Shown here in pieces: positions 5,002 through 47,337 of a DNA stretch of 64,000 nt (positions within the stretch are counted from its first letter, which is position 1; each line of letters begins with the position of its first letter). Both the position numbers and the translations under genes were made by a program. The DNA lies in the NCBI GenBank assembly GCA_037447605.1, contig CM074810.1:1584880-1648879 (forward strand), in the 5' to 3' direction. This DNA is from Zygnema circumcarinatum SAG 698-1b. Lineage: Eukaryota > Plantae > Zygnematophyceae. The notes beneath the pieces were generated by a model. It was not told where the DNA came from, made no database searches, and was given only the letters and a program-made list of their open reading frames with translations.

Positions 5002-6241
5002 GGGTAGTGATATTTCCACCCCTTTTTTGGATCCAAACACCCCTTCCCGGCCGGGCAGATTTCAAAAAGGTTTAAAAACGGAAATTGCCTTTTTCATACC
5101 TTTTTGGAATCGATACCCACCCTCCATCAGCAGATTTTATTTTTGCGAAACAAGGAAATAACCCGTCACCCCATTTTTAATATCCCGCCTACCTGAATTT
5201 TTTTTCATGCGTACGGTCAATCGCAGCCGTCGATTCCCTCGCAGATCGCAACACGGCAGATCACTATTGGATCTGCAGCCGGGCTCGGTCACAGCGAATG
5301 GCACGTGCCCACGTATCCCGCGAAACCCGTCTCAAACGTTTGTCCGTACAAATATCGTACGGTCGCAACTTTGAGGAACCCCAATATTTCGTACATTGAG
5401 AGCTTGGACCAATCAAAGTTTTCCACGTCCAAAATGTAACACGTGGCAGATGTTGATTGGCTGGGAGTTAACAATGACGAGATCTCGGGCCGAAGGACGC
5501 CCGCACTCGACTTGCGATTTGGCTTTGACGGGACTCGTGGGCGCCTTCCATTCGCTAAGATCGAGCCCGGCTGCAGATCGAACGGTGATCTGCAGTGGTG
5601 TGATCTGCGAGGGAATNNNNNNNNNNATTCCCTCGCAGATCACACCACTGCAGATCACCGTTCGATCTGCAGCCGGGCTCGATCTTAGCGAATGGAAGGC
5701 GCCCACGAGTCCCGTCAAAGCCAAATCGCAAGTCGAGTGCGGGCGTCCTTCGGCCCGAGATCTCGTCATTGTTAACTCCCAGCCAATCAACATCTGCCAC
5801 GTGTTACATTTTGGACGTGGAAAACTTTGATTGGTCCAAGCTCTCAATGTACGAAATATTGGGGTTCCTCAAAGTTGCGACCGTACGATATTTGTACGGA
5901 CAAACGTTTGAGACGGGTTTCGCGGGATACGTGGGCACGTGCCATTCGCTGTGACCGAGCCCGGCTGCAGATCCAATAGTGATCTGCCGTGTTGCGATCT
6001 GCGAGGGAATCGACGGCTGCGATTGACCGTACGCATGAAAAAAAATTCAGGTAGGCGGGATATTAAAAATGGGGTGACGGGTTATTTCCTTGTTTCGCAA
6101 AAATAAAATCTGCTGATGGAGGGTGGGTATCGATTCCAAAAAGGTATGAAAAAGGCAATTTCCGTTTTTAAACCTTTTTGAAATCTGCCCGGCCGGGAAG
6201 GGGTGTTTGGATCCAAAAAAGGGGTGGAAATATCACTACCC
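5002..6241. mobile_element. Long-TIR DNA transposon (Mutator/Foldback-like) with 8-bp TSD; interior lost in gap
   Basis: 5002-5616 is the reverse complement of 5627-6241 (615-bp arms). Termini read GGGTAGTGATATTTCC. Direct repeat AACTTAAA lies at 4994-5001 and 6242-6249. Confidence 0.8.
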
Positions 6242-8927: not shown

Positions 8928-10445
8928 ATGGCTGCCATGGCTTCGAGGCTCTCCTGCAGACCCCTGCTATTACAGAGGCAAGCTTTACCCCATTTAGTAC
9001 CGTTGCAGCTGCGCTTGACTTTATTTTCTCAGAGACAAGCGCAGCATTTCCGTCGATTTATGTACGGATTTTGTGAAACTAGGGTTCCACATAGAAACGG
9101 GCCTCGATTTAGGCTTTTAGGGTCCAGATTTTACAGAAAATTCTGTTCGCGTTCTACGGAATTGAATACGGGTACTGAAATTCGGGCACATGGAACCGCG
9201 GAAGTTCCTCCGGTGGAGGGAGGGCGAGGGGGAAGGGAGGGCGGGGCAGATTCGAAAAAAATTTACCTTCTTTTTTATGGTAAGCTTTACGGGCTTGAAT
9301 GTGAATTAAAGTTAATTCAATTTAATTTTAACAAATGCATCAAACTAATTTTTTATCCAACTTTTAAACCCCACAACGAATTACGTTGACTTAATCAAAA
9401 CCACTAAGCCACAATTTTTTAAATTGCGAATTCAACTACTAACTCAATGCAACCACATTTTTTCAGACTACGTTAAGGATGCCGCGGAACGGCGAGCTCC
9501 AATGAGAGAGCGCCACCTGGCACTCGCCCGCCAGCTGGCGGCGGAGGGCAAGCTCCTATTGGGCGGGGCCTTCAGCGAACCTCTCGATGGAGGGTGCTTG
9601 ATTTTCCTCACCGCTAATGAAAATGGTCAGATTGTGCGAACCCAAAAACCACAAACCAAAAACCAAAAACCAAAACCCAAAACCCAAAACCCAAACCCAA
9701 AAACCAAAACCCAAAACCAGAAACCCAAAACTCAAAACCAAAAACCAAAAACCAAAACCCAAAAACCAAAACCCAAAACCCAAAAGCCAAAACCGAAAAC
9801 CAAAAACCAAAACCCAAAACCCAAAACCCAAAAACCAAAACCAAAAACCAAAAACCAAAACCCAAAACCCAAAACCCAAAAACCAAAACCAAAAACCAAA
9901 AACCAAAACCCAAAACCCAAAACCCAAAACCCAAAACCCAAAAACCAAAACCAAAAACCAAAACCACCCAAAACCCAGAACCCGAAAACCAAAACTCAAA
10001 ACCCAACCACCAAAAACCACAAACCAAAAACCAAAACCCAAAAACCAAAACCTAAAAGCCAAAGACCAAAAACCAAAAACCAATTTCCCACCTTGCTCTT
10101 GATCAAGCTATGTTTTCCGACTTCTTGGTCCGCTTCATGGTAAACTATGAAACTATGAATATGAAGCCCTAAAAATCCTAAAAACCCTAAAAACCCTGAA
10201 AACCCTAATGACCCTCAATGACCCCTCCCCTCTATGCAGACATTGAAGAGCAGTTCGTCTCCCATGACCCCTATGTCCTGCACGGCCTCGTGACGTCATG
10301 GCGAATTCGAACATGGAGCCCCGTTGTTGGTTCCCTACTTCCGTTAGACTTCACCTTCACCTCACCTCCTCTTAACGGCGCGCCTTCTCTTCAAGAAGAG
10401 AAGAGAAATAATGTAAGCCGAATGGCCCTACACCCTAAACCCTGA
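8928..10445 (+). CDS. YCII/YciI-like domain protein with N-terminal organellar presequence; exons 8928-9279, 9467-9625, 10240-10445 (or 10240-10412 if fused to YicC)
   Basis: KIYLLFY|DYVKDAAERRAPMRERHLALA...GKLLLGGAFSEPLDGGCLIF...|DIEEQFVSHDPYVLHGLVTSWRIRTWSPVVGS matches the YciI-like pattern. Splice phases are consistent. The first ~48 aa are Arg-rich with no acidic residues. Confidence 0.85.
9640..10085. repeat. Degenerate (CCAAAA/CCCAAAA)n tandem array in YCII intron 2
   Basis: Imperfect 6-7-bp repeats, directly visible. They account for all the KPKT/FGFW ORFs here. Confidence 0.85.
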
Positions 10446-10593
10446 AACCGCTAAAGTCTTTCAAAAAAAAAAAAGAAAAACCGACAAAATATTGAAGCTT
10501 TGAAAAGCCACAAGCCCCAGAAATCTGAAAAGTCTCCAATGGTTAAAAAGCAGCGGTAATCTCCCAACCCCTGGTTATTAAAATCTGAAATGT

Positions 10594-13500
10594 ATGGGCT
10601 TCCAGGAGAGCAATTTGAAGCGAAGCCCGGTCTCGGGAATGACCGGATTCGGGCGAACCGAGGGGACTGCAGGACAGCTGTTCTGGTCATGGGAGGTGGG
10701 CCGTACATGCATGCAGAAAGAGAAAGATAGAGAGAATGGGGGAGGGGGAGAAAGGGAATTTGAGTGGGAGGAGAGAGAGAGAGAGAGAGAGAGGGTATAA
10801 GGAGCGACAAGGGGAGAAAAAAGTGGCGCCGGAGAGAGATGGAAAGGGGAGAAGAGGAAGGCAGAGGGGGGAATAGGGGCAGAGAAAGGAAGAGTGAGAC
10901 AAAGGAGAGAGAGGGAACGGCGGAAGGAGGGGAGGTGGGCGAAGAAGACGTTCTGGGAGGGGTGGGGAGGGGAGGGAAGGGAGGAAGGTGAGGGGGGTGA
11001 GAGAGGGGGAAAGAGTTGAAGGAAGTTGGTGGGAGGGAGTAGGGAGGGAGGTGTTGGGAGATGGATAAGAATAAGAGAAATGGGAAGTGGAGGTTGAGTA
11101 TGTGTGTGCAACGCTCCCCTGTGCGAGAGAGAGAGGGAGTGAGGGAGAGAGAGGGAGGGAGAGAGAGAGGGAGTGAGAGAAAAAGTGGAAGTGAGAGAGA
11201 GAGAGGGAGTGCGAGAGAGAGCCTCTCTCGCTGATCCGAACGATGTTGTGGGGGGCGTCTACACTCGTCACGTGCAGGGCAGGCTCGCAGTGTGAACGGT
11301 CGATCTCTCGACGTTCGGGTTCGGCTTCCGGACTCTTTTGGACCCATGCAGCAGCTCGCCACGTCAGCAGTTTCGGAACGATTTGCGAGAGGGAGCATCT
11401 CTGTCCACTTGTCAGTGAAGGTGTGGAGTCGTCAATAGTTTTTTTTTATAAAAAAAAATAAATAAATAGCGGATACCCCGATTCCTTTTTACAAGTGGGT
11501 TTTTTTTTTTTGGGCCTTTTTGGGATTGCAGGTGGACAAGGGGCAGCAAGAGAGCAAACTGAATATCAACAAAGAGGGGATTTTGCAGGTAAGAAAACAT
11601 AAAGTCGTTTTTTTATTGCTTGTCTGAAACATACTCGAATTTCCCTTCTCGCACTTCCTTGCCTCCTCTCCCTTCACCCCGTCTTCCACCCCCTCTCTCT
11701 CTCTCTCTCCCTCTCACTTCTTTTCTCTCTTTCGCTCTCCCTGTTTCCCTCTATGTTCTTCCTTTCTCTTTCGTACGCCGGTCCTCTCCTCTCTCTATCT
11801 CTTTCTCTCCCTCTGTCTCCCCCTTTCCTTTGCTGAAATTTTTTTTTTCCGTAATCTCTTTCTTTCTTCCACGATGGCAGGCAGCCGCTATGATCGAAGA
11901 ACTGCGGAATACTGATTCTGAAGGAGTCCTGGCAAAGTTCCCCCCCATAACTTTGGACTCCCTACTGAAGCTGCCGGTGAGAGTGCACAGCGAATTATGG
12001 CTAAAAAAATCTTGAAAAAAGGGATTAAACCTAGAAACTAGAAATTAGGACTATGGAACTAGAATTCTAGATTTCACGTCGAGGTTCAATTGTTAACTTC
12101 AATTTAAAACGACAAAGTCATGTCATTGGTTGCCTCTCAGGGAATGGTCCAATGGGTGGATGCGGAAGAGAGTGAGGGCGAGAGAGAGACCCACATGGCA
12201 GCTGTGACAGATAGGTATCTCCTCTCCATCTTTCATTTTCTTTCGAATGGAGTTTCTTGTTTGTAAAGGACTACTTATATAACCCTCAGTAACCCTTAAC
12301 CCTAAATACCATACACGCCTAATGACCTTCTCCATCTCCCCACTCCACCTCCCCCTCCCTCTTTCATTGGCTTTTCTTCCTCTCCTCCCCATCCTTCGCT
12401 CTCCCACACCCTATCCCTCTCCCTCCCCCCCTCCCTCTCCCTCCCCCCCTCCCTCTCCCTCCCCCTCCCTCTCCCTCCCCCCTCCGTCTCCCTCCCCCTC
12501 CGTCTCCTCCCACCCCCTCCCTCCTCCTCCCCCTCCCTCTCCCTCCCCCCCTCCCTCTCCCCCCCCCCCCTCCCTCTCCCTCCGCCCTCCCTCTCCCCTC
12601 CCCCTTCCCTCTCCTTCCCCCTTCCTCTCCCCCCCCCTTCCTCTCCCTCCCCCTTCCTCTCCCTCCCCCTTCCTCTCCCTCCCCCTTCCTCTCCCCCCCC
12701 CTTCCTCTCCCTCCCCCTTCCTCTCCCTCCCCCTCCTCTCCCTCCCCCCCTCCCTCTCCCTCCCCCTCCTCTCCCTCCCCCGTCCTCCTCCCTCCCCCCC
12801 CTCCCTCTCCTCCCTTCCTCTCCCTCCCCCCCTCCCTCTCCCTCCCCCCCTCCCTCTTCCCCCCTCCTCTCCCTCCCTCCTTCCTCTCCCTCCCCCCTCC
12901 CTCTCTCCCTCCCCCTCCTCTCTCTCCCCCTTCCTCCTCCCTCCCCCCCTCCCTCTCCCTCCCCTTCCTCTCCTCCCCCCTCCTCTCCCTCCCCCACTCC
13001 CTCTCCCTCCCCTCCCTCTCCCTCCCCCCCTCCCTCTCCTCCCCCCTCCCTCTCCCTCCCCCCCACTCCCTCTCCCCGCCCTCCTCCCTCCCCCTCCTCT
13101 CCCTCCCCTCCCTCTCCCTCCCCCCCTCCCTCTCCCTCCCCCCTCCCTCTCCCTCCCCTCTCCACCCCCTCCCTCTCCCTCCCCTCCCACTCCCCTCCCC
13201 CCCTCCCTCTCCCTCCCCTCCCTCTCCCTCCCCCCTCCTCCTCCCTCCCCCTCCTCTCCCTCCCCTCCCTCTCCTCCCCCTCCCTCTCCCTCCCCCTCCT
13301 CTCCCTCCAACCTTCCTCTACCTCCCCCCTCCCTCTCCCTCCCCTCCCTCTCCCTCCCCCTTCCTCTACCTTCCCCCCTCCCTCTCCCTTCCCCCCCCCT
13401 CCCTCTCCCTTCCCCCCCTCCCTCTCCCTCCTCCCTCCCTCTCCACTCCCCCCTCCTCTCTCCCTCCCTCTCCCTCCCCCGTCCTCTCCCCCCTCCCTCT

Positions 13501-16232
13501 CCTCCCCCCTCCTCTCTCCCTCCCCCCTCCCTCCCTCCCCCCCTCCCTCTCCTCCCCCTCCCTCTCCCTCCCCCGTCCTCTCCCTCCCCCATCCTCTCCT
13601 CCCCCCTCACCCTCCCACTCCCACCTCCCTCACCCTCCCCCCCTCCTCTCCCTCCCCCATCCTCTCCCTCCCCGTCCTCTCCCTCCCTCCCCTCCCTCCC
13701 CCCCTCCCTCCCTCCCCCCCTCCCTCTCCCTCCCCCCTCCCTCTCCCTCCCCCTCCCTCCCTCCCCCTCCCTCTCCCTCCCCCTCCCTCTCCCTCCCCCC
13801 TCCCTCTCCCTCCCCCTCCCTCTCCCTCCCCCCTCCCTCTCCCTCCCCTCCCTCTCCCTCCCCCTCCCTCTCCCTCCCCCCTCCCTCTCCCTCCCCCTCC
13901 CTCTCCCTCCAACCTCCCTCTGCCCTCCCCCCTCCCTCTCCCTCCCCCTCCCTCTCCCTCCCCCTCCTCTCCCTCCCCTCCCTCTCCCTTCCCCCCTCCC
14001 TCTCCCTCCCCCTCCCTCTCCTTCCTCCTCCCTCTCCCTCCCCCTCCCTCTCCCTCCCCCTCCCTCTCCCTCCCCCGTCCTCTCCCCCCCCCTCCCTCTC
14101 CCTCCCCCCTCCCTCTCCCTCCCCCTCCCTCTCCCTCCCCCTCCCTCTCCCTCCCTCTCTCCCTCCCCCGTCCTCTCCCTCCCCCGTCTCTCCCTCCCCC
14201 CTCCCTCTCCCTCCCCACCTCCCTCTCCCTCCCCCCCTCCCTCTCCCTCCCCCGTCCTCTCCCTCCCCCGTCCTCTCCCTCCCCCCTCCCTCTCCTCCCC
14301 CCCCTCCCTCTCCCTCCCCTCCCTCTCCCCCCTCCCTCTCCCCCCTCCTCTCCCTCCCCCTCCCTCTCCCTCCCCCCTCCCTCTCCCTCCCCCCTCCCTC
14401 TCCCTCCCCCCTCCCTCTCCCTCCTCCTCTCCCTCCCCCTTCCTCTCCCTCCCCCTTCCTCTCCCTCCCCCTTCCTCTCCCCCCCCCCTCCTCTCCCTCC
14501 CCCTTCCTCTCCCCCCCCCTTCCTCTCCCCCCCCCTTCCTCTCCCTCCCCCTTCCTCTCCCTCCCCCTTCCTCTCCCTCCCCCTCCCTCTCCCTCCCCCT
14601 CCTCTCTGTGCTTGGTCCGCAGCCTGCTGGCAGCTTTGGACCAGTTGGCAGCTTCCAGACGATCTGAGGGCGCTCGGTTGGCGTTGATCCTGGCCGTCCA
14701 ATTGGACGAGATCGCCGATCTGACGGAGGAGGCGGCAGCACAGGCAGCCAATCGCCTTGCAGCTTTGAAAGAGCGCTTTCAGAAACAAGTAAAGCTTTTT
14801 CTCTCCCTCCTCCTTCGTCTTTCTTCGCCCTCTAATCCCTTTTTTTTTTTTTTCTTTTTCTTTGGGGCCCCACTCTTGTAAGGAAGGGCATTTACCTTTT
14901 AGTCTGGTCAGTTTCGGTTTCTTGAGAAAGCTCAATAGCTGGTGAAAAGCTTATTGTTACAGCTATTGGTTTGACTTTATTAATTTGAGTTGACTTTATC
15001 AACCAGGGATCAGACTTCGTCTCTCATAGCTTTTGCTGACAGTACAGAAGGTGGGGAACGAATGACAGGTGAAGGAGTTAGTAGAAGTGGACTGCCGTCT
15101 TGATCCTGAAAGGTTGGAGATGGAGGTGGCCATCCTAGCAACCAAGATGGATGTCAGGGAGGAGGTCGGCTCTCTCTCGCTCTCCCTCTCCCTCTCCCTC
15201 TCCCTCTCCCTCTCCCTCTCCCGCTCCCTCTTTCTCTCCCTCTCCCTCTCCCTCTCCCCTTCCCTCCCCCTCTCCCTCCCCCCCTCTCCCCCTCCCTCTC
15301 CTTCTCCGTCTCCCTCTCCCTCTCCCTCTCCCTCTCCCTCTCCCTCTCCCTCTCCTCTCCCTCTCCCTCTCCCTCTCCCTCTCCCTCTCCCTCTCTCCCT
15401 CTCCCTCTCCCTCTTCCCTCTCCCTCTCCCCCTCCCTCTCCCTCCCCCACCCCTCTCCCCCTCCCTCTCCCTCTCCTTCTCCCTCTCCCTCTCCCTCTCC
15501 CTCTCCCTCTCCCTCTCCCTCTCCCACATCATCAACCCCACATATTCCTTGTTGATGACGTCAGCACATGTGATTCCTGTGGGCCATGTACCCAGCCGGT
15601 GCTTGTTACTCGCGCGTGATGTCAGCATAGCCTGTTTCCCTGGTTATTGACGTCAGCATATGTTTTGGTTTACAGGTGGAGCGGCTGCGCGTGCATATCG
15701 CAGCTGCGGGGCTCCTCGAGGGGAGGAAGGAAGGAAGAGGAGGAAGGAGGGAGAAGGGAGAGGAGAAGGGAAGAAGGGGTTCAGAAGGCGGTGCCGGTAG
15801 GACGGGCTTTGGAGTTTCTTGCACAGGAATTTGTGAGGGAGGCCAACACCATCTGCTCTAAGGTATGCATGGGGAGAGCATTATGGGTAGGATGTTGTTT
15901 TTTCGTTGATTTGAACTAAATTGGGTTTAGTTTATTTGAATTGAGTTGGTTTGAGCAGATCGAGGTCAGTGTGAACGAGGCGTACATGAGGGGGTTCAGA
16001 GTGTCCAGACATTGTGAATGCTGGGTTGCCATTTCAAAGCAGAAGCAGCAGCTTGATTCAAGGGCCACTGAAGGCTAATTTCTCGGATACAATTTAAAGA
16101 GTCTGAGTCTGACCTGCGGGTTTTTTTGCGCATGCGGCAATGCAGGCGAATGACGTCGTATTGACGCAAATCGGGCTAAAAATCAAAGGCGTGACAGAGC
16201 AATTGAGAGAGCAAGCCGCCAATGTCGAGTGA
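10594..16232 (+). CDS. yicC: YicC/YloC-family endoribonuclease (YicC_N + DUF1732), intron-containing; exons 10594(or 10606)-10695, 11283-11420, 11532-11588, 11881-11976, 12141-12214, 14623-14788, 15069-15164, 15676-15862 (1-nt frame break), 16146-16232
   Basis: [11 protein letters not shown]...WSWE|[16 protein letters not shown]...RGSI...[10 protein letters not shown]|GMV...[16 protein letters not shown]...[22 protein letters not shown]|VERLRVHI...[23 protein letters not shown]|[28 protein letters not shown]. Every YicC block is present in order, with phase-consistent GT-AG introns. Confidence 0.9.
12322..14610 (+). repeat. ~2.3-kb homopyrimidine (C/T) low-complexity tract in YicC intron 5
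   Basis: Almost pure CT repeats such as CCCTCTCCCTCCCC. This tract produces the long Pro-rich and Gly/Glu/Arg-rich ORFs. Confidence 0.9.

Positions 16233-40383: not shown

Positions 40384-47337
<6,954 letters not shown>

Follow-up and report, generated by a model that had tools for sequence, protein, structure and literature searches.

The closest described relatives of the gene reported here are the bacterial YicC/YloC proteins, represented by E. coli YicC (8VER, 8VES, 8HVJ), B. subtilis YloC and C. difficile CD25890. YicC was identified as an endoribonuclease only in 2021–2024. A second bacterial family that concerns us are the YciI-like proteins (PF03795; NF009508; H. influenzae HI0828, PDB 1MWQ), which stand alone in bacteria and whose function there is, to our knowledge, not known. 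The functional residues of E. coli YicC and B. subtilis YloC have been described (PMC11417398, PMC8906540), and E. coli YicC acts upstream of PNPase (bioRxiv 10.1101/2021.05.11.443692). A further point of comparison are the other genes of bacterial origin in streptophyte algae. With these our gene shares that it is nuclear, intron-bearing, a member of an otherwise bacterial family and common to related algae, while it differs from them in combining a predicted RNA-decay enzyme with a new domain fusion. In the literature searched, we found no description of a eukaryotic YicC or of a YCII-YicC fusion.

The DNA analyzed is a 64-kb stretch from the alga Zygnema circumcarinatum SAG 698-1b, in the following called the window. 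An earlier note had assigned positions 10594-16232 to a bare bacterial-type YicC gene in a green-plant genome, beginning at ATG 10594. Judged from the sequence, it is supported that an organism of the green lineage carries a YicC/YloC gene of bacterial type in its nuclear genome; the wording "green plant" holds for the lineage only, as the organism is an alga related to land plants and not a land plant itself. The gene itself appears to be larger than thought. As the best explanation overall, which we regard as probable, positions 8928-16232 of the + strand would constitute one nuclear gene of 12 exons that encodes a leader, a YciI-like (YCII) domain, a linker and a complete YicC. In contrast to the bacterial YicC/YloC genes, the window gene is nuclear, interrupted by 11 introns, equipped with an N-terminal leader and fused to a YCII domain in front.

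When we scanned 1.84 billion representative proteins by HMMER with the 46 residues of exon 5 as the query, 58 matches were obtained. Most of them (53 of 58) contain the YicC motif behind a bacterial-type N-terminus, mostly with MTGF at or near the start, and two very long proteins without the motif look spurious. The other three are of eukaryotic type and all streptophyte-alga-like, as far as such a short 46-aa query reaches. One is GAQ80952.1 of Klebsormidium nitens (KFL_000670100, UniProt A0A1Y1HT03; P0003), a protein of 525 aa deposited as a hypothetical protein. Another is SM000072S21210 of Spirogloea muscicola (P0005), which has 409 aa in a model that lacks one exon. The last (P0001) is an exon on the 55-kb metagenome contig L001, which belongs to a Klebsormidium relative, is about 74% identical and has the same exon structure. 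Identity of the window protein amounts to about 45% with each of the algal proteins and to 44% with the best bacterial one. With orthologues in Klebsormidium nitens and Spirogloea muscicola, the idea of a gene specific to this genome had to be abandoned. These orthologues and the window gene have the YCII-YicC architecture in common, and the alignment shows that the algal copies share an insertion of 20-25 residues that is absent from bacteria. Searches with words from P0003 or from a mixed alignment, both saturated by 8000 bacterial candidates among which even P0005 was not listed, returned neither this genome's own protein nor further eukaryotes, and the same two kinds of sequence were missing when we used words from the open reading frame containing exon 10. 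A metagenome scan with exon 9 as the query gave only two bacterial loci, and the exact products of four open reading frames of the window are not on record.

All 11 introns of the gene model read GT...AG. For the YicC part alone this leaves nine exons and eight canonical introns, just as the earlier note had counted them. The three exons further upstream encode the arginine-rich leader and the YCII domain and join the YicC part in phase. Exon 1 (8928-9279), delineated from its open reading frame and sequence, contains the ATG, the leader of about 108 aa and the first YCII residues; it ends in phase 1 at a gtaagc donor, and its intron agrees in position and phase with Klebsormidium intron 3. 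Exon 2 (9467-9625) provides the YCII core according to profile matches and to the alignment with the YCII part of the Spirogloea and Klebsormidium proteins. By alignment with the same two proteins, exon 3 (10240-10412) was found to encode the C-terminal half of YCII with the DPY...IR.W block, followed by the linker. Exon 4 (10606-10695) completes the linker and encodes the N-terminus of YicC (SGMTGFGR...WSWE), and its end directly after WSWE falls on the same site as Klebsormidium intron 5. YCII and YicC are linked by the strong exon 3 donor gtaagc at 10413 and the exon 4 acceptor ttccag at 10605, both in phase 0. The ATG at 10594 lies in the frame of exon 4, just upstream of this acceptor. 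Most likely, the gene therefore begins at 8928 and not at 10594, because the acceptor at 10605/10606 joins the three further exons upstream.

For the remaining exons, we mapped the Klebsormidium protein exactly onto its own contig and compared the introns. Exon 5 (11283-11420; 138 nt), which encodes the RSVNGR...RFARGS block of the YicC-like_N domain, and exon 6 (11532-11588; 57 nt) have the length and phase of the corresponding Klebsormidium exons. Exon 7 (11881-11976), placed by alignment with the orthologues, measures 96 nt compared to 87 nt in Klebsormidium, with the boundaries in common. Length and phase agree again for exon 8 (12141-12214; 74 nt, phase 2 end) and for exon 9 (14623-14788; 166 nt), which the alignment assigns to the long YicC stalk helix. 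Exon 10 (15069-15164) has the same 96 nt as its Klebsormidium counterpart and ends with DVREE, a motif that contains the catalytic glutamates matching E216 and E217 of E. coli. Exon 11 (15676-15862; 187 nt) comprises the RLRVH block, a GA-rich tract that forms the algal-specific insertion and the VGR...QEF.REANT.CSK block, and it contains one base too many. Finally, exon 12 (16146-16232) encodes the C-terminal helix with an 11-residue motif that includes the E281 equivalent and closes with a TGA stop. Altogether, exons of 138, 57, 74, 166, 96 and 84 nt are identical in length in both algae, and ten intron positions are common to them, including the phases, so that the intron positions are indeed conserved. 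Compared to Klebsormidium, the window gene has the basic leader, an extra linker intron and the frame break, and it is devoid of Klebsormidium intron 12. Bacterial genes have no such introns. From the introns in common we conclude that the ancestor which these algae share already carried the gene in its nucleus, introns included.

The introns had been described as repeat-filled, which applies to introns 2, 4, 8 and 10, all with long simple repeats, and is not the case for the others. Intron 8 is filled by a 2.2 kb pyrimidine-strand microsatellite (12399-14606, + strand; CTCTCC / 16-nt unit) with a GC skew of -0.88, found with Tandem Repeats Finder. A repeat scan detected about 64 copies of (CCAAAAA)n within intron 2 (9642-10083, + strand), and Tandem Repeats Finder located about 59 copies of (CTCCCT)n within intron 10 (15170-15525, + strand). 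About half of the stretch compared with sequencing runs is microsatellite. The run shares of 0.09-0.35, obtained for seven coded organisms, are not evidence of expression and may, including those of 0.09-0.18, reflect microsatellite words only.

Membership in the YicC family was examined with the profiles PF03755 (YicC-like_N), PF08340 (YicC-like_C, DUF1732) and TIGR00255. Every motif listed in the earlier note is present in the + strand translations of 10594-16232, and the YicC block order was read correctly, as the Pfam matches are colinear. The exon pieces cover YicC-like_N at profile positions 2-22 (exon 4) and 24-68, and YicC-like_C at 21-50 (exon 10, with 21.5 bits), 66-92 and 93-120 (exon 12). 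Exon 5 alone reaches 39.4 bits against YicC-like_N (cut-off 25), while the second part of exon 11 alone gives 36.4 bits against YicC-like_C (cut-off 27), well outside what chance would produce. Both Pfam domains stand in the same order as in the bacterial proteins. In addition, the acidic active site of YicC/YloC is conserved: the alignment with E. coli YicC shows that the equivalents of E216, E217, E252 and E281 are kept, together with the His of RLxxH (H228 in YloC) and with M5, N28 and F244. The fold was checked on the Klebsormidium orthologue only. This protein scores 176.9 bits with TIGR00255 (cut-off 167.5) and aligns with the E. coli YicC chains 8VES, 8VER and 8HVJ with E values of about 1e-27. 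Its predicted model has a pLDDT of about 90 over residues 207-525, with the algal insertion unstructured, and superposes on 8VER_B with a Foldseek probability of 1.00 and a TM-score of up to 0.80. The window protein differs from the bacterial ones by the low-complexity insertion, which separates the His helix from the VGR block.

We scored the YCII domain of the window exon by exon, not as a spliced whole. Exon 2 yields 43.8 bits (E 2e-11) with the NCBIfam profile NF009508 (YciI-like) and 22.2 bits (E 2e-4, 52 residues) with Pfam YCII (PF03795), which is just below the cut-off of 24. The orthologues are clearer: with NF009508 the Spirogloea protein attains 102 bits and the Klebsormidium protein 68 bits, and the former also passes the Pfam YCII cut-off with 38.8 bits. 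As in the HI0828 alignment, the conserved His and the DPY block are retained in the N-terminal domain. Unlike the bacterial YciI-like proteins, however, the YCII domain of the window is fused to a putative RNase. In the full Klebsormidium and Spirogloea proteins YCII precedes YicC as well, and since the C-terminal half of YCII and the YicC N-terminus share a single exon in both Klebsormidium and contig L001, the fusion is beyond doubt in these two. We considered a bacterial operon as the precursor of the fusion. Among 80 alphaproteobacterial loci no YciI-like gene was found within 1.5 kb of yicC (0 of 80), and we rejected this precursor for the sampled loci; a bacterial precedent of the fusion is not known. 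Probably, the fusion arose in the alga. The leader in front of it is strongly basic, with 10 R, 0 K, 0 D and only 1 E in residues 1-60, and suggests import into an organelle. The N-terminus of the Klebsormidium orthologue is acidic (17 D/E versus 3 K/R), which argues against organelle targeting as a common feature.

One irregularity needs to be discussed separately. The 12-exon coding sequence adds up to 1675 nt, which is 3n+1. Within exon 11, the frame of the VGR...QEF.REANT.CSK block is shifted by +1 relative to that of the RLRVH block, so that the assembled sequence offers no uninterrupted frame over both YicC domains; two catalytic glutamates, the equivalents of E252 and E281, and the C-terminal helix lie beyond the break. 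The shift by +1 must occur in the GA-rich tract at 15721-15778 (+ strand), a 23-nt repeat in 2.6 copies with a G4 run at 15772-15775. No GT donor spans the break, and neither a GT-AG intron nor a plausible GC-AG intron of the right length is available. Introns with a GC donor were tried and discarded; they would remove conserved residues and leave the spacer too short. In Klebsormidium, the equivalent of exon 11 is split by an intron into 59 and 124 nt, together 183 nt, compared to the 187 nt of the window without an intron. We conclude from this that the window lineage lost an intron and that the low-complexity insertion that it flanked is coding. Regarding the extra base, we consider an assembly error in the low-complexity tract to be the likelier cause, followed by a real lesion.

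How firmly the single-gene reading stands depends on its rivals. Bacterial DNA in the assembly, as a contamination or as an insert, would account for a family that is otherwise bacterial, but it is contradicted by eleven spliceosomal-type introns, ten of them at Klebsormidium sites, by a GC content of 0.55 in the coding sequence versus 0.57 in the introns, and by the surroundings. The neighbors are intron-split eukaryotic genes (NTF2, Sina, the ketol-acid reductoisomerase KARI, a serine carboxypeptidase and an aldose epimerase), next to a retrotransposon pol. The assertion that the locus is no contamination was thus well founded, and we reject this explanation as having virtually no chance of being correct. 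Another proposal is that the ancestral fusion underwent fission into two genes, a YCII gene that ends at the stop 10443-10445 and a YicC gene that starts with ATG 10594. Indeed, the frame of exon 3 runs into that stop 33 nt past the proposed donor, and 12 nt ahead of the proposed acceptor there is an ATG in frame. We nevertheless believe such a split to be unlikely: three relatives contain the fusion, two of them within one exon, the donor gtaagc and the acceptor ttccag are strong and match in phase, and a second promoter would need to fit into about 150 nt. The more serious rival concerns the frame break. If the extra base were real, translation would stop at 15859-15861, the product would be devoid of the REANT block and the last helix, and the gene would be a young pseudogene that died recently. 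This would agree with the frame break in the assembled sequence, which no intron removes, and with the fact that the window protein is absent from the library of 1.84 billion proteins. The extra base is, however, the sole lesion; GT...AG is retained by all 11 introns, none of the other 11 exons is interrupted, and past the break the exons stay open in the shifted frame, with conserved sequence and correct splicing. Because all other exons, the splice sites and the catalytic residues are intact, an old pseudogene is argued against. Moreover, the break lies within the GA-rich 23-nt repeat with its G4 run, a typical site of assembly errors, and the orthologues are under purifying selection, with a dN/dS of about 0.12 between K. 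nitens and contig L001 over 180 codons and at a dS near saturation. Taken together, we see a recently dead gene as possible yet rather improbable, and favor the intact single gene.

The question of where the YicC part came from was addressed with a tree of 97 rows. Besides the 4 algal sequences it comprised 79 genome sequences with a name and 13 without, as well as E. coli, for which alone a place outside the Alphaproteobacteria is known. The four algal sequences form one clade (support 100/99), inside which the window groups with the Klebsormidium pair (99/85). This clade is placed among the Alphaproteobacteria without support, and an AU test did not reject a tree that holds all 92 other bacterial rows together (p 0.39). 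The resemblance to alphaproteobacterial YicC, which had been noticed from the motifs, is borne out by the best 120 of the candidates that were scored and by the 80 best genome loci, almost all of which are Alphaproteobacteria. Identity to the closest bacteria amounts to about 40-44%. A plastid origin is argued against by a survey that has no YicC in the annotated Cyanobacteriota (bioRxiv 10.64898/2026.05.21.726821). Of the two sources left for discussion, we lean slightly toward horizontal transfer. A mitochondrial legacy, meaning endosymbiotic transfer from the mitochondrial ancestor and subsequent loss in nearly all other eukaryotes, is a tentative possibility. It would fit to the nearest relatives being Alphaproteobacteria, to the AU test, which did not reject placing the algal clade outside all the alphaproteobacterial sequences in the sample, and to the window leader, which resembles a presequence. 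On the other hand, many independent losses would be needed, and the eukaryote-type matches are only streptophyte-alga-like, although the search with 46 residues was not exhaustive.

Based on these data, we propose the following history. The window gene would be the orthologue of Klebsormidium nitens KFL_000670100 and Spirogloea muscicola SM000072S21210, with a YicC part that may have been acquired once from an alphaproteobacterium-like source. The introns and the YCII partner would have been gained before these algal lineages split, and inheritance would have been vertical since then, under purifying selection. By analogy to the bacterial enzymes, the mechanism is likely that of a YicC-type hexameric, metal-dependent endoribonuclease. 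The protein would assemble as bacterial YicC does, into a hexamer that clamps structured RNA, and the RNA would be cut by the glutamate cluster with bound Mg or Mn. In the window species, the protein is probably imported into an organelle, where YicC might start the decay of RNA and exonucleases such as PNPase might finish it.

In summary, the sequence evidence describes a real gene whose enzyme family is known, whose host is unusual and whose architecture is new, with at least two other streptophyte algae having the gene. It is undescribed in the literature searched, though a database entry as a hypothetical protein already exists for the Klebsormidium copy. In practical terms the gene carries modest weight, as it adds one more bacterial-type gene to algae that are known for such genes. 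For the biology of the lineage, the introns in common show that the gene was present before Klebsormidium-like and Zygnema-like algae diverged from their common ancestor. With the accepted phylogeny, this would mean that the land-plant stem also had it and that it was later lost. The conserved fusion furthermore provides a concrete hypothesis for the role of YciI-like proteins. Read as a Rosetta stone, it would tell that YciI-like proteins work with the YicC ribonuclease and that streptophyte algae keep a working, organelle-directed YicC which was lost in land plants, a reading that we regard as doubtful. If true, YicC would count as an RNase of eukaryotes and not of bacteria only, and a testable lead on the role of YciI would be at hand.

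Some introns of the YCII-YicC fusion gene are occupied by simple repeats. Inside intron 2, which lies within the YCII part, we found a (CCAAAAA)n array of 440 nt (window 9642-10083) followed by a telomere-like (CCCTAAAAA)n repeat (10167-10208). Intron 8 is filled by a tract of 2.2 kb (12399-14606) whose + strand consists almost entirely of pyrimidines (GC skew -0.88). At several places in the window the ORF translations contain XXXX, corresponding to short runs of N, for example near 1290, 4500, 5620, 17850, 31450, 33390 and 42000. The assembly thus contains small gaps, a fact to be weighed in judging the reliability of the one surplus base in exon 11 (15676-15862), which breaks the frame within a GA-rich tract (15721-15778).

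One of the N runs is spanned by both a + strand ORF (5396-5830) and a - strand ORF (5413-5847). Because both give the same 144-aa translation, the data indicate that the stretch 5396-5847, some 450 nt long, is an almost perfect palindrome with an assembly gap at its centre. Furthermore, two pairs of ORFs with identical translations were detected 1947 nt apart, at 43774-44504 and 45721-46451, adjoining or falling inside the ketol-acid reductoisomerase gene. Either a segment of about 1.9 kb has been duplicated in tandem here, or the assembly has created the duplication.

Among the relatives of the YicC part, we encountered a 616-aa protein (P0189) with the precomputed Pfam domains YicC-like_N, YceG and YicC-like_C, which is a YicC fusion of another kind than YCII-YicC. 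Four metagenome loci (L034, L048, L049 and L053) carry an alphaproteobacterial-type YicC in bins labelled Flavobacteriaceae, Archangium and Lactobacillaceae. In the 97-row YicC tree these YicC sequences cluster with Alphaproteobacteria, and the four contigs are probably mis-binned.

Finally, the Klebsormidium nitens fusion protein (P0003, GAQ80952.1) begins with an acidic region, of which residues 6-45 are conserved at 38% in the Klebsormidium-like metagenome contig L001 (6925-7059). Given this conservation in a metagenome relative, the acidic N-terminus of the Klebsormidium protein is real coding sequence and not a mis-called 5' end.
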